Shown one piece after another: positions 2,311 through 46,690 of a DNA stretch of 64,000 nucleotides (the stretch's first letter is position 1; every line of letters starts with the position of its first letter). The notes under the pieces were generated by a model. It saw nothing but the letters and a program-made list of their open reading frames with translations. It was not told the origin of the DNA and did not search any database. The DNA is from Piromyces finnis finn (lineage: Eukaryota; Fungi; Neocallimastigomycota). The position numbers and the translations under genes were made by a program. Location of the stretch: assembly GCA_002104945.1 (NCBI GenBank), contig MCFH01000019.1:372001-436000 (forward strand). Reading direction: 5' to 3'.

Positions 2311-4821
2311 ATGTCTCAAGAAATTATTAAGATTGCTGAACAAGCTCGTCAAGCTTCTCTTGTTTTACAATCAACTACCACTGAACAAAAGAACGCTACT
2401 ATTAGAAAGATTAGAGAATTCCTTGAAAAGGACAAGGATGCCATTCTCAAAGCTAATCAACAAGATTTAGAAGTAAGTTTTATTTTTTTTCTTTTTTTTT
2501 TTTTATTTTTTTGAAAACTTAGAGTAGATGATAATAGCATCGAAAAAAAAAAAAGTATCGAAAAATATTAAAACCTACAAAATAAAACAAAAATAAAAGA
2601 GGAACTTATCAATAAAATAAATAAAAATAGTATTGTTATTACTGCATTTTATTTTATTTTTTTTTTAAAATAAAGAGATTTAATAATAATAAAAAATAAT
2701 AAAACAACAATAACAATAATAATAACAACAATAACAATATAAACAAGATAAAAAAAATAATAACAATAATAGTGACAACAACTACAATGATAACAATAAA
2801 GATAACAAAAAAAAAAAATAATAAAATAAAATAAAATAAAATGATTATACTTAAACTTTTTAATTAAATTAAAATAAATAAATAGAAAGCCAAGGCTGAA
2901 GTCGAAGCTGGTCGTCTTTCTGCTTCCCTCTTCAAGAGACTTGATCTCTCTAGAGGTGACAAGTACCAATCATTATTAGAAGGTGTTTCTGATGTTGACA
3001 AGCTCCCAGACCCAACTGGTAATTTTTATTTTTGATATCTTAATAATGATAAATAAAAAATAATAATTTAAAAAAACAAGATAATAATAACGTCAGAAAT
3101 AGTGAAAAAAGGATTATATAATCATTATTTTTATTAAAATCAAAAATGATCTTAAACATATATATCAATTATTTAAATAAAAATAGGTAAGATTACTTTA
3201 GCTACTCATCTTGATGATGGTCTCGATCTTTACAGAGTTACTTGCCCAGTCGGTGTTTTACTTATTATTTTCGAAGCTCGTCCAGAAGTTGTTGTTCAAA
3301 TTTCTTGTCTTGCTATTAAGTCTGGTAAATCATAAGAATATCTTTTTTTTTATTAATAAAGAAATAGAAATTTTAACTACTTGTGTATTAATTAAAATTA
3401 TTAATATTTTTTTTTGATTTAAATAATTTCAAATTAATCAATCAATCAATCAATGAAATGTTATAAATAATATATAAATTTTAAATTCAAAAAGGTAATG
3501 CCGTAATTCTTAAGGGTGGTAAGGAAGCTTACAATTCCAATGTTGCTTTATACCAATCATTACAAAATGCTATCAAGTCTCTTCCACCAGAAGAAGCCAT
3601 TCCATTAGCTTCTGTTCAACTTGTTTCTTCCCGTGATGAAATTAATGAATTATTAGGTTTAGATCAATACATTGATTTAGTTATTCCAAGAGGTTCCAAG
3701 AAGATGGTTAGATACATCCAAGGTAGTACCAGGTAATTATATTAAACCTACATCTTTCGTATATACAACAACACCAATATTTATGAAATTGGCATAGATA
3801 TTTTTGAAAAAGTTTTATTCATAATAAAGATGGATTATAATTGGTGAACTTATTATAGTACTATTTTAAATTTTTTAAGTCAACCAACAAGGAACATTTT
3901 TTTTAATTCAATATATAATGATATATGTAGTTATTTGTTTCCTCTTTTAAGTATATAATAATATATATTAAACTTTTTCACCATTATTTTTTCCTCTTAT
4001 AATACATTTGAAATATATAGAATTCCAGTCTTAGGTCATGCTGATGGTTTATGTTCAACCTACGTTGATGAATTTGCTGACATTAATAAGTCACCAAAGG
4101 TTGTTACTGATGCCAAGGTTAACTATCCAGCTGCCTGTAACGCTACTGAAACTTTACTTATTCACTCTGCTGTTTTAGAAAGTCAACTTCCAGCTATTGC
4201 TAAGAGTCTTGTTGAACAAGGCGTTACTATGAGAGCTGATGAACGTGCTTTAGCTGTCTTAAAGACTACTGATATCCCAGCTGACAAATACCAAGCTGCT
4301 ACTGAAGAAGATTTCGATACTGAATTCTTAGAATTAACTATTGCTATCAAGGTCGTTGATTCCTTACAAGAAGCTATTGGTCACATCAACATTCACGGTT
4401 CCCACCACACTGAAAGTATTATTACTGAAAAGAAGGAAAATGCTGAATTATTCATGGCCAAGGTTGATGCTGCTGGTGTTTACTGGAATGCTTCTACTCG
4501 TTTCGCCGATGGTTTCAGATACGGTTTCGGTGCTGAAATTGGTGTAAGTATTCTTGGATTTTTAAACTAATTTGTTGACACCATGAAATTTTTTAAAAAG
4601 TAAAAAAAAAATATATATATAATAATGATGTTTAACGATGCTTATATGCTATTTTAAACAAATAGGTTAGTACCAATAAAACTCATGCTCGTGGTCCAGT
4701 TGGTCTTGAAGGTCTTGTTATCTACAAGTACAAGCTTTACGGTAGTGGTAATGCTGTTGGTGATTACGGAGCTGGTAAGAGATCATACATTCACTCCAAG
4801 ATCCCAATTAACCAAGATTAA
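2311..4821 (+). CDS. PRO2: Gamma-glutamyl phosphate reductase (glutamate-5-semialdehyde dehydrogenase), 449 aa, 6 exons
   Basis: Exons 2311-2472, 2886-3018, 3187-3324, 3495-3732, 4021-4543 and 4666-4821 splice in frame (GT-AG) to 1350 nt. ProA motifs: [76 protein letters not shown]. Confidence 0.97.
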
Positions 4822-7427
4822 ATGATTTAGTGAAAATAATTAATAATTTATATATCAAAGAAAAAAGTATTTTTCTTAAAAACTATCCTAAATTAGATAG
4901 TATTTTTTTTTATTTTTACAAGGCACATAAAAAAGCAAAAAAAAAAAAAAAAAATAAAAATTTAAAGGGAAAAACAAGTTGTAACTATTTCAGGAAGAAG
5001 AAAAAATAGTAAAAATAATACAAAATATCAATATTATAAAATCAATTGCAAATAATCTACAAATAAATAAAAAATAAATAAAAAAATATATGAAAATAAA
5101 TAGTTTATTCATGTTGGAAATGATACATTATAAGCTGATACTCTGATGAGAAAAAAAATATATATGGATTAGAAAGGCAAATAGATCACTCGATTCTACA
5201 TAAAAATATCTAAGGATTATATATTATACATAAGAATATACTTTAGAATTTTTCTATTATTTAGTTTTCTTTGACAATTCATCATATTTTAAAGTTTTAA
5301 ATTTTTATTTTTATGAAATATTAATTTTTATTCTATTTGAAATGTCTGTTACAAATTAAGAAAACTTTGAAGTCATTTTCTATCTTAATCACAATAAGGA
5401 ACAGAAATTATAGTCCTATTTATAATATACATGGACATTCAATATTTATTTATTTATTCCGTTTAAATATTGAATTTTATACATATTTTTTGGATCTTTT
5501 TTTTTTTTAGTTAAAATTTAAAAATCACTTTCAGTATAATTAATTTTCATTTACATCTTTTTGATCCTTGCTTTTTTTAAAAATTTATTCATAAGATATA
5601 TCGTCAAGTTTTTTAAAAGATAATGCAATCTCTTTTCAACCGTTCATTTTATTTCTGAATAAAAAGTTTTCTTGCTTACTTTCTTGGTAAATAAAAAACA
5701 CTTTCTCCCAACCTATTTCTGGAACGTTTTTTTTCGTTTACTTTTTAATCATAAAAATATTTGTGTTACATTAACTTATTTCATATATTGCAATATATTG
5801 TATACCATATATTAATTTAATTGCTAAATCATTAAATTTTAATGATTAAATTAAATTCAATATTTGTTATTACATAAAAGGTTTTAGTATTACTGATATT
5901 AATATATTATTAATGTATTTTTAATATATTTTTATTATGTAATCAATATAAATAAATTAATAACCATATTAAACTCTATTAAATGAGAAAATAATAATTA
6001 ACGTATATTTGAATTGAATGTAATATATTATCAATTATATTTACCCTTTTTCAAATGTTACAGTATAATAAATATGGAATAAATATATTATACTTGTATA
6101 TAAACAATATATTTTAATATATGGATATAATAAAGTAAATTAGGAAAAGATTAAAAAAAATAAAAATATAAAACTCTTTATTAATATTGTGATTCTACAA
6201 TATTAAAATGAAATCTAACCCTATCACTAATTAATAATAATTATTAATAATTTCAAGATTAAATTAATTCTTTATATTTTATCTTTATTTTTTTTTTTTT
6301 AAAAAAATATATTTATATATTATTTATATTATTTATCTTTAATCTGTAAATTGTGATAATTGAGTTGTTTTTTTAATGTTATTATCTGTTTAATCTCTTT
6401 TAATACAATAAATAAATAATATTAATCTAATATTTATTTATATATACAAAAAAAAGTAAACAATAGTCATAATATCTATTAAAATAAATATTTCAAAGAT
6501 TGAATATAAATGATATGTGATAATTATATACATTTAAAGTCTTTATTTAATAGAAATTAAAATTGAAAAGAAAAAAAAAAAATAAGCAACAACAACAACA
6601 ACAACAACAATAAATAATAATAATAATAAAAACAGAAACAAAAATAAAATAATAGAATAAAAATTGAGAATAATAACAATATCACTAAAAGAGTAATTTA
6701 AAAATATTTTTATTAACAGTTTTTTTTTTTTTTTTTAAATATATTTTCTATCAAGGAATATATATGTATGCAAAGTTTTTTATATCACAAAAAATTAGAA
6801 ACTGTTAAAAAAGAATATTTTTAAAGTAAAAGAAAAATAATAAATGCTATTTTAATTTTTTAAAAATATTACCAAAAAAAAAAAACTATCGAGTTAATTC
6901 AATCAATAAAGAAAGAAAATTGACAAGGTTTAAAATAAATCTTTAAAAAAATTTACGAAAACCACAATAAAGTGACTTTTTTTTTTTACACCATTAAATC
7001 TATTATTAGAGTCTTTTAATTTATTATTCATAAGTAATCAATTTAAGTAAACATTTCGAATGAATGATATTCATTTAGATATATTTTATTAGTAAATTAT
7101 ATATATAAAATTTAATGATAAAAGATTAAACAAAAATCGAAGATATTTTGTGAATTTTCTATTTATTTTTTATTTATTGAAACTCATAACCAAGGCATAA
7201 CTATAATAAATAAAAAGTATTGTATAATATAGTTTTAGTTTTGAATAAATAAATTTATAATAATTTCAATACAATTTTTAGTATTAACATCCAATTAATA
7301 ATTTATAATACTATATCAATTTCTTTAAACATTTTTATATATAAAAATAAAAACTATATAAACAAATCAAATATTATATATATGTATAACAACAATAACA
7401 AAAAAAAAAAAAAAGAAAAAGGAAACA

Positions 7428-37182: not shown

Positions 37183-38853
37183 TTAAAGTTCCATTGTATT
37201 ACAATAATCATTAAGAAGTAGTTTTGCTTCTTCAATTGTTAAATGACAACAAAGAGGAGTAGAACCTAAAATATAATGTGCTTCTTTATTATAAAAAACA
37301 ATAGTGGATGGTGGTTTAATAGGACCAATAATATTGGATACTTGACCATTAAAATCATTATTACTAGTTAAAAATGTTGTTAAACTTTGTGGTTGACAAT
37401 AACATGAAGGTAGAGGAATAAATGAATAATTATTGTATTTATTACAAGTTTTTAAATCAATTTCATACATTTTGGTTTGGATCCAAAAAAATCTTTAAAA
37501 AAAAAAAAGGAAAATTACAATTATGTGAACAATAGAGTATTAATAATAAGAAGAAAAAAAAAAAAAAAGATTAATATACCTAAATTCAACATCACAATCA
37601 TAGGTAGGGTATCCTTTCCAACACATAACATCTTTAATATAATAAATATTATTTTCTTCACTATATATACAATCTAAAATAGAATAATTTTGATATTCTC
37701 TATTAAAATAACAATAATAATTTAGGTGTATAAATATTAATATTGGTTTCAACATTCGTTCATTTAATATTCCAAAAAAAAAAAAAAAATATTACCTAGA
37801 TAATGGATTGCCACCTGGTATATTAGAATAAAAAGTATTTATTATTGAACCTGTGGTTATTTAAAATAAAATATTATATTTTTATTATTTGTCTTGTCTT
37901 ATTTTTTTTTTAAATATTTGTAAAAAAAATAATAAAATAATTCAAATTTACCATCAATTCTTCTACTGACCGTTTTTCCTATATAAATTAATGGATAGTT
38001 ATAATATTAATTAGTTTATATAAATTAATCTAATTAGTAAAAAAAATTTTTTTACTATTTTTATCATACCATTATAGGAAATAACTAAGCATGGTATACC
38101 ATCGGGTATCTTAACAGCAATCCAATTAGTTTCGAAATCGTTTGGTATTTCTTCTAATTTTTCACTCAACATTAATTGATTTCTAATAAAAAAAGAAAGA
38201 AAGAAAATATATATATATATATATTATATATACTTTTGGTAAATAATACACCTTGTCTACACATTTCTACAAATATATCTATTATAAAACTAATAATATA
38301 TTACTAACATAAATTCATTCTTTTTCTTCTTATGCTTATTCTTCTTATTCTTTTTGACTTTCTTATCTATATCCATTCCTTCTTCTTGATGGTAACTTCC
38401 ATTATTGTTTTTTTCAATTCTACTTTCATTTTGATTTTTTGATATATTATTTTTATTGGAAATTTCAATTTCAGAATCAGAATCATTTTCTGAATTTTCA
38501 TTTTGAATTGAAAATTCAATTAATTTTCTAGCTTGATTTACTAAAGAACTTCTTTTCTAGTTATTAAAAAAAATAATAATAAAATAAAATAAATTCCAGG
38601 GTTATATTATAATATTCAATGGATATCTTAATGTTTAATATTTTATAATGAAATTTTAAAAGAATTAAAAATCTTTTAATAATACTTGTCTCTGTTCTTC
38701 CAATATTCTTCTTCTTCTTTCTTCCTGTTTTTCTTCTTTTGTTTTTGAATAAAAAGTAGCTTTATAGTCTTTTTTTCTAAAAGAGGTACTATTTTCTTGT
38801 TCAGTTTCATTATTCAGAGTAAAGGTGAAAGTAAAATTCTCCATTTTTTTCAT
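37183..38853 (-). CDS. SNUPN: Snurportin-1 (m3G-cap-type snRNP nuclear import adaptor), divergent, about 6 exons
   Basis: IBB-like KQEERRRRILEEQRQKRSSLVNQARKL, then [65 protein letters not shown] and FYNKEAHYILGSTPL. This is collinear with human SNUPN as I recall it. Start may be 38844. Confidence 0.9.
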
Positions 38854-39804
38854 TTTATATATATATTATTAAACTTGTATATATAAATGATATAAACTAT
38901 TAATATTATTAATGTTATTGATGTTAATATTTCTATTTTTATTACTATTTATTTTTCTTGTTTTTATTTGGCAATGTTAAAAATAAATTTTCAATTTATT
39001 ATTATTGATTTAATTATTAATGAAATGAAATTTCAATTTATAATAAAGAATTTAAATTTTATTTTTTAAATAAAATGTAGAAATAAATGTACACATACTT
39101 TTTTTTCTTTTATCCTATAAATATGGTTTGTGGTAGATATATATATTTGTTACTACTGCTATTTTCTTTTTTTTTAAAAGATAGATGAAATTGTGAAATT
39201 TGATTTTAAAATGTATTCCTTTTTTTAATTAATTAATTATGAAATTTTTTAATTTATAATAAAATTTAATTTTAATAATTAAAAGGAATAAATTTTAAAA
39301 AATATAAATATACCATAAAATCCCTCAAAAAAACTGTTTTTTAAAAAATTCTAAAGTTACACAATACTTTAAATATATTGTTATATATTCATCAATATAT
39401 TTATAATAAATTAAAATTCAATTATAATAAATGGAAATCATAAATTAAAATTAACTTTGATTGGGTTAATTAAAAAGAAACTATAAAAGAAGAAGTTGTA
39501 AATTAAAAAAAAAAAAATTGAAGACTTTATACTATTTTTTAAAATTAGCAAGGAAATAAAATTGAAGTAATTCTTTAATTACTTTTGCTCTTTTTTATTT
39601 TTTTTCTATTCATCATTAACATTTTATTGTTTAATAATATCAAAAACAACAAAAAGTTATGGATATAAAATTTAAAATTATCTGAATTTTTAAAATAATT
39701 ATAATTTATTATTAATTTTATTATTATTATTACTCAGTAACAAAATAAAAAAAATATAAATTTCAAATTAAAATTCTATCTGTTAACTAAATCATTAATA
39801 TAAA

Positions 39805-41146
39805 ATGACTACTGAAACAAGTGTTATAACCAATAAAAAATTATTAAGAAACCAACTAAGGAATTTACTTAAAACAATAACTGAAAATGAACTAGTATAT
39901 CAATGTAGGCTTATAATATTTGTTATATATATTATTTTAAAATAATCATGAAGAAAATAACATATATATTATATAAAAAAAATTATTATAATAAATTGAA
40001 ATATAAGCAAATGAAATTTTTAAAAGAGTCATTTCATTAAAAGAATATCAAGAATGTAAAAATATTAGTATATATTTGCATATGCCAAAAGGTGAAGTAA
40101 GAACTGAAAGTTTACTTAAACATGCTTTAAAATCAGGAAAAAATTGTTATGTACCCTATATTATTAATGGAACTGAAATGGTTAGTTATAAAAAAAAAAA
40201 AACATTCTTTTATTATAAATATAATAATAATTGTAGTAAAGGAAATCATTAAATAGAATTAAAATTTATTAAAGGAATTTCTATCATTTATAAAATTTAT
40301 AAAATGAATGGTAATTATTAATAATTTATTATACTATTGAAAAAAAAGGAAATGGTAAAAATCAATTCTTGGGAGGAATTTTTATCATACCCAAAAACTA
40401 AATGGGGTTACCCAGAACCAAGTGGTATGACTGAGAATTCAACTGGTATATATTCTAAACAGTATTTTAAAAATATATCAAATTTGTTATAACACAAATT
40501 AATAATTTTATAAAACCTACAAACACTATTACTTCTATCATTATTATTAATACAAACAATACCACTAATAATAATAATAATAATAAATGAAGCCTTGAAA
40601 AATAAAGAGGGCTTAGATTTAATAATTGTACCAGGTAAATATTGTTATATATTTTTTTTTCGTATAATTTATTAAATCCAATTAATGTATAATTATTTAA
40701 AAAAGGAATGGCATTTGATTTAAAAGGAAATAGATTAGGACACGGAAAGGGGTAAATTATAATATTTTTTTATTATTAATTAATGTTTTAATATAATGAA
40801 TAATACAAATTATATAATAAATATTTTATCAATTGGGTAATATAGTTATTATGATAGGTATATTGAAAGAGCTAAACAATTTTCAAAATTAGGAAATAAA
40901 GAAGGACCATATTGTGGTATGTTATATATATAATATTATAAATATACTATTATATAATCGAATTTATTTATAATAATTTATTATGTTGTTTAAATTGTAA
41001 TAATATACCATGTCAATATAAAGTTTCGCTTTCATTGAATGAGCAATTATTAGAACAAGATATACCAACAAATCAATTTGACGTGAAACCTGATATAATT
41101 ATTACACCACAAGGTTCAGTTTCACAAATAACACAAAAAACTGAAG
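39805..41146 (+). CDS. MTHFS: 5-formyltetrahydrofolate cyclo-ligase (MTHFS/Fau1); 3' end open, see fusion finding
   Basis: Exons 39805-39904, 40008-40180, 40349-40445, 40593-40634, 40706-40751, 40846-40916 and 41024-41146 are in frame. Motifs: [71 protein letters not shown]. Unspliced, the frame runs to a stop at 41253 through intron-like sequence. Confidence 0.92.
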
Positions 41147-41293
41147 GTATTTTTTTTTTCCATAAGATGATTAATTTTTTTTACGATAATTATAAACGGC
41201 GGTATTTAAATTACTATTTTAAAATACATAAATTCTATATAATCCATATATAATAATATATATTATTTACCCATTCTTTAATAAGAAACTAAA

Positions 41294-41838
41294 ATGGCTG
41301 AAACTGAAGAAGTTAGTTTTATAAAAATTTTAATATATATCATAATTTTTTAAAAAAAAAAAAAAATTGAAATTTAACAAAACTCTAAATTATAAAAAAT
41401 AAAATTTTCGATAAAGTTAGAAGACTGGGAACTTGAAGAATTTGAACCAATTGCTGTTCCAACAATGTAAATTTCATAATATAATATAACATTTTCAACT
41501 TAACAATATTATACTTAATACTATTCAATATTATAAATAATAGTGAAAAGAAACAATATTCTTTACAAACAGAATCATATATTAATGGATATACTCCCCA
41601 GGTAAAAAGCATGAATTTATTAAAACATTAATTTATAATAATATCATTGTGTATTTATTTTTATTATCTGTTTATACATAAAAAGGTAAAAATCTTAAAG
41701 AGAGATAAAGATGAAGTTAAACAAAAGTTTGAAGAAAGTCAAATAAAAAGAACAATAATAAATACAAAAAAGTCATTAGCAGAAAGAGAAGAAGAATATA
41801 GAAAAGCAAGATTAAAGATTTTTGGAAAATCAGAATAA
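41294..41838 (+). CDS. SZRD1: SUZ-domain protein (SZRD1-like), 92 aa if started at its own ATG, 4 exons
   Basis: Exons 41294-41311, 41417-41466, 41544-41601 and 41686-41838. MAETEELEDWE...PQVKILKR...KKSLAEREEEYRKARLKIFG matches the SUZ signature. Confidence 0.82.
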
Positions 41839-42325
41839 ATATTTTCATAGAATAAAAAAATATATATAAAGATTTTGAATAAAGAAATGAAAAATAAAAA
41901 TAAAAAGAAAGAAAGAATCACACAGCTTTATGTATTTAAATTTTGATATTACAATAATATAACTTTAAAATAAATTTTAATAATATCATTTTCAGGATAA
42001 TTAAAATATAATCATCATTAATACAAATTGTATTATATTACACATTTTTAAAAGTTTTCAAATTGACTTGTAGAATTTGAACATCTTTTTATATATAAAA
42101 AAGAATTTGAATAGAAATATTTTTTAAAAGACAAATATTACTTGTTATTTAGATTTTAAGCATACTCGAAATATATTTATTTCATTATTATATGATTATT
42201 ATATATGGTATAAAATGATACAGACTATATACATGTTGATTTTTCAATTTTTTTCTTTTTTTTTTTTTTTTTTTTTGAATTATACAAAGTTAGTGCAAAA
42301 GTCTTCCAACCAATAGCATTATATT

Positions 42326-43792: not shown

Positions 43793-46690
43793 ATGGATAT
43801 TTCTACTTTTGGTCAATTTAGTACCCAAGGTGTACTAATTAAATTTAGTGATTTAACCATCCTTTGTGATGCTTCTCTTTTTACCATAAACCAAAAACCT
43901 CTTCCATTTGTGGATTATAATATTCAAGAAATGGAAAATGTTGAATACATATTTATATCCAATTTTTATCAAATGATGGCCTTACCACTCATTACAGAAT
44001 ACACTCATTTTACAGGAAAAATATATGCCACAGAACCAACAGTTGAATTTGGACGGTAACAATTATAGAGATAAATATATACATATAATTGTAAAAGTAC
44101 CTCATAACTGGATAAATACTAAATGTTTAAATGTAAAATTTATAATGATTTAAAATTTGAAATTTATAAATGAATGTATAAATAGATTATTAATGAATGA
44201 GCTTGTTCATGAAAAAGAAAAATATTTAATTGGAAAAGATTTTTTAAGAAGGTATATAATATTTTTTTTAAGAAAAATAAAAAAAAGTTTATATTATATA
44301 GATATTAAAATAGAGTAGAGAAAAAAGAATCTAAAATTCCATTATATTTTAAAATATATATAAAATCTTAATTTTAAAATTTGTTTAGAAATTTCAATCC
44401 AATTTTTAATAATCCATTATATTCAGAATATGATATCAATTCCTGCATTGAAAAAATACAATATGTTCATTATGGAGAAATATTGGTATATTTTAATATA
44501 TTATTCATTTAATATAATTAATAAATTATCAACTATTCATGCATACCCTTCATTTTAATTTTATAATTTTTAAAGAGTTTATCAGAAGACACCAAAGTTA
44601 TAGCTTCAAGTTCGGGTTATTGCTTAGGTGGAACAAATTGGTCTTTTTTAAATTCAGATAAAAAGGTAAATAATAAGAATGAAAAGAAAAAAAAAGTATA
44701 AAACGAAAAAAAAAAAAATAATAATAAATGCTTTGAAAACATATATTAAGAATAATAAATCATTGTAATATATTATAATATTATTAAAATCTTTATTTCA
44801 TAAAGGTGGTCTATTTATCATTATCTTCTTTTCAACATTGTCATCAATGTCCTTTACAAATTGAACCATTATTAAATCCTGATGCTCTAATTATTTCAGG
44901 AGGAATTGCTATTAATAATTTTGATATCAATGAGTCTATTAAAAAAATTATTTCATCCATAAGTAAATATATTTTAAAAAATTATATTACATTAGCAAGA
45001 AAAGAGAGATATCATGATAAATATATATATATATATATATATATAGTAAACATTTCATTAATATATAAAAATAATTTTTGTGTATTGCTTTTTTTTTTTT
45101 ATAAATTAAAATAGTGTTTACACTTCAAAATGGAGGAAATGTTATTATACCCGCTTTATCTTGTGGAATTATTTTTGATATATTAGAATACTTAAGTATT
45201 TATACCAAAGATATTAAAAATCATTCTTATCATGTAATATCTCCAATTGCTAAACATTCACTACACTATTCAGGAATTTTATCGGAATGGTATTAAAATT
45301 ATTAAATATTTATATATATATTTAATTAAATACTATTTAATCTTTATTAATTAAACTCACATCTACTTATTCGAAAAATATATAATATCGATAATATTTT
45401 TCAAAGGATGAATGAAAAACACAAAGATAGAGTATATCAACAAGAAGAACCTATGAGATGTCATGAAATGTTAAATAACGGTCAATTACATACACATTTC
45501 AGTATTCAAGACTTTTTCAAAAATAAAAAATCTGAATCTTCAATTATATTTATTGATCATCCTTCTTTAAATATGGGTGATGTAATACCATTAATAAATC
45601 TCTGGAAAAATGATCAAAAAAATACCTTAATATGGATAAGTAAATTATTCAAATTACTTATAGACTTTATAATATATTAATATTCATAGTCATATTAAAA
45701 AAAAATTTTTTTTATTATGTATATATTAATAGCACCTACGGATGACTTACCAGAGATTTTAAATAATTTTCAACCACTCTATTTAAATGTTCAATATTGT
45801 CCAATAGATATTAGATTAAATGATAAACAATTTAAAGATTTAGTAGAAAAAATAAACCCAAAAGAAGTTTTATTACCGGAGTCTCATTTTAAACCATCTC
45901 GATTAAGTATGACATATCCTGATGATGGTTTATATTTAAAATATGGACAAAAAAGTTACCATCTTTATGACAAAAATAGGATAAAATCAGCATACATTAC
46001 AGAAGAGGTAAATTAAATAATTATTTAAATTTATTATATTATCTCTATTAAAAATTATTACAACATATGATGATACAAATATTTAAATTTTTATTTTTTT
46101 TTTTTTCTTTTATTTTTCTATTTTTATGCTGCTATCTTTTTTAAATATATATATATTCTTTTTTTAATAAATAATTAAGCTTGCTAAAAAACAATTTCCA
46201 AAATATCATAATGAAACCTGTTTATATTATCCTTATCGAGGTGTCTTGGAATTTACTAATGGAAAAATATATATTAAATCATTGAAAGCTTACGAAGATA
46301 GTGACCTTGATGTTAAATACAAAGAAATTGATATTCAAGATCTTTGTCAAAAAATTAGTAATGTTAGTATATATTAATGGATATTAATTGATTAAAATTA
46401 AAATAAAAAAAAAAAAAAAATCATAATATTTTAATAGATTTATAATTAATAAAATTTATCGATTATTTATTTTTGATATAATACAGTCTGGCCTTGGAGA
46501 AACATTAATTGAGAAAAATTATGATTATACATATATTAAATTACCTGTTTATCATGCTTTACTAAAATTCAATAATAGTTCAATTCAAATAGAAACAACT
46601 AATAACAAAATACGTAAAAAGATATATGATATAATTAAAAATATATTTGACTTAACTACCGATGGAAATGAAAAAAACAACATAAACTAG
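43793..46690 (+). CDS. INTS9: Integrator complex subunit 9 (catalytically inactive metallo-beta-lactamase/beta-CASP), multi-exon
   Basis: [129 protein letters not shown] and [10 protein letters not shown] are all INTS9-family blocks. Confidence 0.88.

Follow-up and report, generated by a model that had tools for sequence, protein, structure and literature searches.

An MTHFS-SUZ fusion gene in the anaerobic gut fungus Piromyces finnis, conserved and expressed among its relatives

A gene for the folate enzyme MTHFS that reaches its conserved end without a stop codon, directly upstream of the exons of a small SUZ-domain protein, raises the question of whether the locus holds two neighbouring genes or a single fused one. 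We examined this question for positions 39805-41838 (+ strand) of a 64,000-nucleotide stretch of the Piromyces finnis genome (contig MCFH01000019.1, positions 372,001 to 436,000; the whole stretch is called the window), for which an earlier note, made from the sequence letters, had proposed that in-frame splicing of a 139-nucleotide intron joins the two parts. Our analysis indicates, with a probability of about 0.92, that the locus is one gene of 11 exons encoding a 312-amino-acid protein in which MTHFS is followed by a mostly disordered, SZRD1-like SUZ tail of about 100 residues, and that this gene is conserved and expressed in related fungi. All letters and coordinates proposed for the junction proved correct, namely the end of exon 7 at 41146, the GTATTT donor, the acceptor at 41285, the 139-nucleotide intron and the offset of the downstream ATG. 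The 11-exon, 312-residue product predicted from the in-frame splice also equals the deposited P. finnis gene model exactly: the 11 exons sum to 939 nucleotides, and the spliced window model was identical to P0156, that is BCR36DRAFT_583145 of Piromyces finnis, a hypothetical protein of 312 amino acids. The exons, together with the two introns on which the argument turns, are given here with matches to L012, a 1038-nucleotide transcript contig from a close relative with 85% protein identity.

39805..39904, + strand: exon 1, with the start ATG at 39805, a phase-1 end and donor GTAGGC; L012 match at 39802-39904
40008..40180, + strand: exon 2, MTHFS domain core; Pfam PF01812 at 35.3 bits (cut-off 27)
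40349..40445, + strand: exon 3, with its donor at 40445/40446; the SGMTE..ST segment is present in all orthologues
40593..40634, + strand: exon 4, encoding ..GLDLIIVPG
40706..40751, + strand: exon 5, with the MAFD.. motif, whose columns are invariant in alignment A1
40846..40916, + strand: exon 6, with the YYDRY... motif
41024..41146, + strand: exon 7, the last MTHFS exon, ending ..AAA ACT GAA G in phase 1; L012 match at 41023-41146
41147..41285, + strand: intron 7, the fusion intron, 139 nucleotides, GTATTT...AATAAG, phase 1
41286..41311, + strand: exon 8, a 26-nucleotide mini-exon, ..ETKMAETEE; L012 678-705 match 41283-41310, directly after the exon 7 block
41312-41416, + strand: intron 8, between exons 8 and 9
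41417..41466, + strand: exon 9, with the acidic LEDWELEEFEPIAVPT motif; alignment A3 shows no variation in its W, E and P columns
41544..41601, + strand: exon 10, encoding ..YINGYTPQ
41686..41838, + strand: exon 11, the SUZ domain, with the stop TAA at 41836-41838; Pfam PF12752 at 45 bits (cut-off 25)

Exon 7 contains no stop codon and ends where stand-alone MTHFS proteins end. The SUZ ATG is located at 41294, 8 nucleotides past the acceptor, and the join, G/AA ACT AAA ATG GCT, is in frame (..TEETKMAETEE..); a single other AG is present inside intron 7, 19 nucleotides past the donor. As had also been proposed, unspliced MTHFS runs into a tail, since with intron 7 kept the frame stays open for 35 codons more (GIFFFHKMINFF...) before it meets TAA at 41251-41253. 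The region has a G+C content of about 18-20% and many short GT..AG introns, and by our own estimate of about one stop per 10 codons at this composition an open tail of 35 codons is uncommon but possible by chance. We regard the junction as more than chance because of its conservation and the transcripts of relatives, and not on the strength of the window alone. Two other readings of the exons were tried and rejected. Placing the exon 3 donor after 40424 gives a protein of 305 amino acids, 7 too short, and was ruled out by the orthologues and by the deposited protein P0156. A ciliate-type genetic code, as a way to account for the missing stop, was discarded as well: there is no in-frame TAA or TAG in any exon, because the standard-code translation is exactly the deposited protein, and Gln is always encoded by CAA.

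What kind of protein does this gene encode? A search of a representative library with exon 2 returned P0001, a protein of 315 amino acids that was 93% identical over residues 35-91, and P0001 as a query led in turn to P0156, which served as the proxy for the joined window model in our searches. The Pfam search of P0156 returned PF01812 (5-FTHF_cyc-lig; 155.7 bits with a cut-off of 27, covering profile positions 1-186 of 186) and PF12752 (SUZ; 45.6 bits with a cut-off of 25, residues 260-312) only, RRM being absent; SUZ-C (PF12901) gave no Pfam match in P0156 at E <= 0.01, no residues being left beyond the SUZ domain. The first half closely resembles human MTHFS (PDB 3HXT/3HY3), with residues 6-206 of the fused protein aligning to residues 5-199 of the 203 in 3HXT (E = 1.3e-38). 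The MTHFS motifs, the N-terminal K..LR, PG.AFD and G.RLG.G.GYYD (GHGKGYYD), are kept, and residues K11, R15, P137, D142, R147, G149, G151, G153, Y154, Y155 and D156 are invariant or nearly so in alignment A1 and match the human enzyme; we take the conserved motif residues to serve nucleotide and substrate roles. Judged by these residues, the MTHFS domain, from residue 1 to about 210, is complete and looks catalytically intact. Unlike stand-alone MTHFS, however, the fused gene lacks a stop codon where the C-terminus usually lies and continues for about 100 further residues with SUZ. In the AlphaFold2 prediction the MTHFS fold was confident, residues 212-290 were disordered (predicted local distance difference test score, pLDDT, below 50), and a helix was placed at residues 293-308 in the SUZ core.

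The earlier note had suggested a search of related fungi for the 5-FTHF_cyc-lig and SUZ domains in one chain, and such proteins were found. Two-domain proteins of 303-331 amino acids, 58-85% identical to P0156, formed fourteen clusters at 90% identity that span Piromyces, Anaeromyces, Neocallimastix and other gut-fungus lineages, with Anaeromyces robustus BCR32DRAFT_326107, Neocallimastix lanati KAG4094022.1 and N. californiae ORY22930.1 among their members; a search of the ESM Atlas returned single-domain MTHFS clusters only. Most of the fused orthologues were on intron-less contigs of 0.9-1.7 kb, in which the full open reading frame of 933-954 nucleotides is uninterrupted. Since ten introns interrupt the genomic locus over 2 kb, contigs as short as these derive from spliced mRNA. 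P0001 was encoded by 15 Logan contigs, of which the eight shown each came from a separate run, and P0287 by 13 contigs shorter than 2 kb, of which the five shown each came from a separate Joint Genome Institute (JGI) sample. The L012 transcript aligned to the window in 11 blocks ending at exon edges, and the block that ends at 41146 was followed directly by the block starting at 41283-41286. For N. lanati we could compare the genome (L018) with transcripts of the same species (L019-L023): the aligned L019 skips about 359 nucleotides at the fusion site, the last MTHFS exon likewise ends ..AAA ACT GAA G/GT, and the next spliced exon is the TEE mini-exon.

Two further features of the relatives' sequences were observed. 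Their fused mRNAs (L004-L010, L019 and L020) have long 5' leaders, with about 300-340 nucleotides before the start codon, and the N. lanati leader is collinear with the genome (L019 2-412 corresponds to L018:2694-3109). The N. californiae protein ORY22930.1 (P0291) is 276 amino acids long, 37 below the 313-residue N. lanati and transcript forms, and matches from the YDRY motif to the C-terminus; the 5' exons of this model are probably mis-modelled.

Having found the same fused protein in several genera, we compared the junction itself. The site of the fusion intron and its phase 1 are identical in P. finnis, A. robustus (L015:4674-4833) and N. lanati (L018, about 4781-5139). Thus, where the earlier note had named orthologues always encoded by two genes without phase conservation as evidence that would count against it, we found fused open reading frames and a phase-1 intron in three genera. 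The linker differs in length and sequence by lineage, and the frame is kept throughout despite indels. The start Met of the SUZ part is present in 6 of the 14 sequences and lost in the other 8; Piromyces and Neocallimastix keep an in-frame ATG, and the ATG found at the A. robustus acceptor is not in frame with the conserved tail. With its ATG lost or shifted out of frame, the SUZ part is not translatable alone from that site in most lineages, and the ATG at 41294 is probably a relic start codon from a time when SUZ was a gene of its own. Rough ratios of nonsynonymous to synonymous substitution (dN/dS; NG86, against three relatives) were 0.13-0.17 in the MTHFS part and 0.22-0.34 in the tail, and these low values in both parts indicate purifying selection on both halves.

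The P. finnis genome, searched as a 56.46-Mb assembly of 232 contigs, contains a single MTHFS locus, and the fused locus was the only match in it to the profile of the SZRD1-like tail. In P. finnis, the fused gene is the only source of MTHFS and of the SZRD1-like SUZ module. The Pfam SUZ model found one other SUZ locus in this genome (G000:C1:582701-582868, - strand; L002:733-1689), a 319-amino-acid open frame with SUZ at its start; in the one open frame examined there, SUZ was the sole domain that Pfam detected, and this locus may encode a protein of the R3H-SUZ type.

Among the relatives, three sequences were candidates for a free SUZ protein. The first, P0270 of Piromyces sp. E2 (PIROE2DRAFT_11623, 92 amino acids), was rejected, since its scaffold has an N run where MTHFS is expected: in KZ150946.1, a run of 2253 nucleotides (L013:1658-3910) separates the snurportin gene from the SUZ exons. 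A phase-1 splice into the acceptor upstream of the ATG would likewise keep the frame there, and PIROE2DRAFT_11623 probably represents the fused gene in truncated form. The second, P0271 (141 amino acids), was rejected as a free SUZ transcript; it begins at an internal MTHFS Met (..RNMENPYC..) and its contig also has a 167-amino-acid MTHFS open reading frame, features which mark it as the product of an intron-retaining fused transcript. The third, P0300 of Neocallimastix, is a true stand-alone SUZ paralog of 99 amino acids, encoded at one locus in each of two species.

L024:6001-6631, N. lanati JACVTC010000034.1: locus of P0300
L025:6001-6631, N. californiae MCOG01000080.1: locus of P0300

The exon structure and the downstream neighbours (LOH1CR12 and Lactamase_B_6) of P0300 are the same as at the fused locus; no MTHFS exons and no called gene were seen within 6 kb upstream, and no transcript contig encoding P0300 was found. 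The sequences most similar to P0300 are the fused tails of P0298 (79% identity) and Neocallimastix itself (74%), and this likeness suggests that it arose by a later partial duplication.

When did the two parts come together? The named MTHFS proteins listed for chytrids, Blastocladiomycota, Mucoromycota, Dikarya, animals and oomycetes have PF01812 alone and are mostly of about 180-240 amino acids, one outgroup fungal MTHFS model being 366 amino acids long. An ancestral adjacency of MTHFS and SUZ was considered and rejected, the downstream neighbours in Gaertneriomyces and Paraphysoderma being EMC6 and a cyclin. The proposal of a lineage-specific fusion, independent of animal MTHFSD, is thereby upheld, outgroup MTHFS being single-domain and, in two outgroup genomes, not beside a SUZ gene. 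We conclude that the fusion arose in Neocallimastigomycota or their stem and was kept by selection. In the simplest route, the MTHFS and SUZ genes would have become neighbours in the gut-fungus lineage, and a donor at the MTHFS C-terminus would then have bypassed its stop by splicing to an acceptor in the SUZ leader. Gene order around the fused locus is conserved among gut fungi: snurportin (-), fused gene (+), then LOH1CR12 (-), Lactamase_B_6 (+) or both. The flanks concerned in the window are 37183-38853 (-) and about 43793-44059 (+), and annotated relatives have snurportin-1 upstream on the opposite strand; the open reading frame at 43793-44059 (+) may be the start of a Lactamase_B_6 gene.

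Several observations weigh against a single fused gene with a functional tail. Reads from four candidate RNA runs gave only chance matches on the window, AT-rich and 20-30 nucleotides long, so that the support from P. finnis itself is limited to the deposited gene model, a k-mer share and the intact conserved frame, and the MTHFS-SUZ protein is known from genes and, in relatives, from mRNA. GTATTT is the weakest-looking of the ten donors of the gene. The linker is variable in length and sequence, the tail is disordered in the prediction, and P0300 of Neocallimastix shows that a SUZ tail can exist unattached to MTHFS. As to the k-mer share, four probable RNA runs (X1-X4) contain 0.35-0.37 of the 31-mers sampled from window positions 39750-41950, where 0.36 is expected for fully spliced mRNA with untranslated regions, 0.44 if intron 7 is retained and 1.0 for genomic DNA. 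Although 35-37% of the 31-mers were indexed for X1-X4, none of the contigs of these runs was placed on the exons; this mismatch between index and placed contigs is technical, not biological.

The fusion can be compared with several known proteins. Animal MTHFSD consists of an MTHFS-like domain and an RRM in one chain. The fungal protein resembles it in joining an MTHFS-fold domain to an RNA-related module in a single chain, but P0156 does not combine an MTHFS-like domain with an RRM: its module is SUZ, its lineage is another one, and its MTHFS part is the sole canonical MTHFS of the fungus and not a divergent paralog. These differences in module, lineage and MTHFS part make MTHFSD and the fungal fusion convergent, not homologous. 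MTHFSD has been listed as an RNA-binding, stress-granule protein (PMC5773659). The tail, in turn, resembles animal SZRD1, which is small and combines an acidic N-terminus with a W-containing motif and a SUZ domain, and the best match of the tail profile outside gut fungi was a spider SZRD1-type protein of 156 amino acids with PF12752 and PF12901 (E = 4.4e-5). It differs from SZRD1 in having no detected SUZ-C and in occurring in P. finnis only as the C-terminus of an enzyme, so the resemblance is to the N-terminal and SUZ parts alone and falls short of the stand-alone protein with SUZ and SUZ-C that defines an SZRD1 orthologue. The R3H-SUZ proteins (R3HDM1/2, ARPP21, yeast Rbs1 and Neurospora PRD-2) share the SUZ domain, whereas the fungal fusion has no R3H domain. 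According to PMC10470013, R3H-SUZ proteins modulate UPF1-dependent decay of target mRNAs, and human SZRD1 requires its SUZ domain to bind the decay factor UPF1. If the analogy with SZRD1 applies, a partner of the fungal tail could be UPF1.

How such a protein might work can be outlined. The MTHFS half would be an active enzyme that converts 5-formyltetrahydrofolate (5-formyl-THF) to 5,10-methenyl-THF in an ATP-dependent reaction, and the flexible SUZ adaptor would tether MTHFS to RNA, messenger ribonucleoproteins (mRNPs) or UPF1-type partners. A bolder proposal is that the fusion couples 5-formyl-THF metabolism to mRNA surveillance or translation, either because SUZ brings the sole MTHFS to UPF1 mRNPs or because folate status modulates SUZ and UPF1; we regard this coupling as a long shot.

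Among the alternatives, the one that survives best accepts the fusion as real but regards it as neutral, the tail being a passenger kept for SUZ expression and folate and RNA being uncoupled. A passenger tail would go well with a linker that is variable and disordered, with the free SUZ paralog in Neocallimastix and with the separate placement of MTHFS and SUZ in two outgroup genomes, which gives no hint that the two were functionally linked earlier; unrelated genes are, moreover, known to fuse in single lineages. It is harder to reconcile with a fusion that at least three genera have retained and that is under purifying selection in both halves, and with animal MTHFSD, which independently pairs an MTHFS-like with an RNA-binding domain. 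We give this alternative somewhat less than even odds.

Considerably weaker is the possibility of a dual-output locus, which would make the fused protein together with another, regulated product, either MTHFS alone, by retention of intron 8, or free SUZ, from an internal start. Partly spliced forms are indeed present among the relatives: five proteins of 234-237 amino acids (P0163, P0277, P0282, P0283 and P0286) retain intron 8 and end after the TEE mini-exon, and one form of 246 amino acids retains intron 9. The recurrence of intron 8 retention in three separate 90%-identity clusters speaks for a second output, as does the fact that in P. finnis it would add 13 codons and then TAA, but assemblies of total and metatranscriptome RNA routinely include partly spliced pre-mRNA, the retained tails are unconserved (VIIQ, VLY, F), and other introns are retained as well, with intron 6 kept in frame in P0161 and P0299 and a retained MTHFS intron splitting the frame of L014 into two open reading frames. 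The intron-8-retaining contigs would encode MTHFS without SUZ and have a premature stop; they may be ordinary pre-mRNA noise or a regulated isoform. For the other product, free SUZ, an in-frame ATG is still present in Piromyces and Neocallimastix, yet 8 of the 14 sequences lack it, none of the transcripts found begins at the SUZ part, and the free SUZ models are only artefacts or a separate paralog. Retention of the fusion intron was seen in none of the shorter cluster members aligned, nor did any of them end as free MTHFS. We therefore consider a dual output unlikely. The earlier note had offered an independent fusion or a dual-output locus; the fusion has held up, whereas a free SUZ output found no support in the P. 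finnis genome.

Finally, it is highly improbable, and for the relatives already largely refuted, that MTHFS and SUZ are two separate genes, the true products being SUZ on its own and an MTHFS with a brief tail of junk residues, and that the fused model and contigs are read-through (conjoined-gene) chimeras or annotation or assembly artefacts. In favour of two genes, the SUZ part opens with an ATG and has a plausible N-terminus of its own (MAETEE..), the GTATTT donor is weak and the Piromyces sp. E2 annotation has a stand-alone 92-amino-acid SUZ protein. Against them, that model adjoins a 2.25-kb N run at the expected place of MTHFS, MTHFS reaches its conserved end without a stop in each of the three genomes read (three genera), no unfused or parent-only transcript occurs among about 45 cluster members, the frame is kept across linker indels while the downstream ATG is lost in most lineages, and the 139 nucleotides between the parts leave no room for a terminator and a promoter.

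We thus return to a single fused gene as the preferred reading of the locus. The analysis supports the P. finnis gene model and places the stand-alone SUZ model of Piromyces sp. E2 beside a scaffold gap. The earlier note had known of no described example of such a protein, and this stands as far as papers are concerned, our literature searches having found none on MTHFS with SUZ or on MTHFS in anaerobic fungi; the fused protein was, however, already a gene model in GenBank and UniProt. The fusion is public as a gene model, yet undescribed in the papers found.

If the proposed coupling were true, the fungal fusion would be a convergent counterpart of animal MTHFSD, and the intron-8-retaining isoform, which its premature stop would probably expose to nonsense-mediated decay, could provide an autoregulatory loop. 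A conserved fusion predicts that its partners work together, here a folate-salvage enzyme and a small, poorly understood SUZ protein. With the MTHFS fold paired twice, independently, with an RNA-related module, a link between folate metabolism and RNA becomes testable, and the fungal protein, which is short, the sole genomic copy and canonical in its enzyme half, is well suited to such tests.

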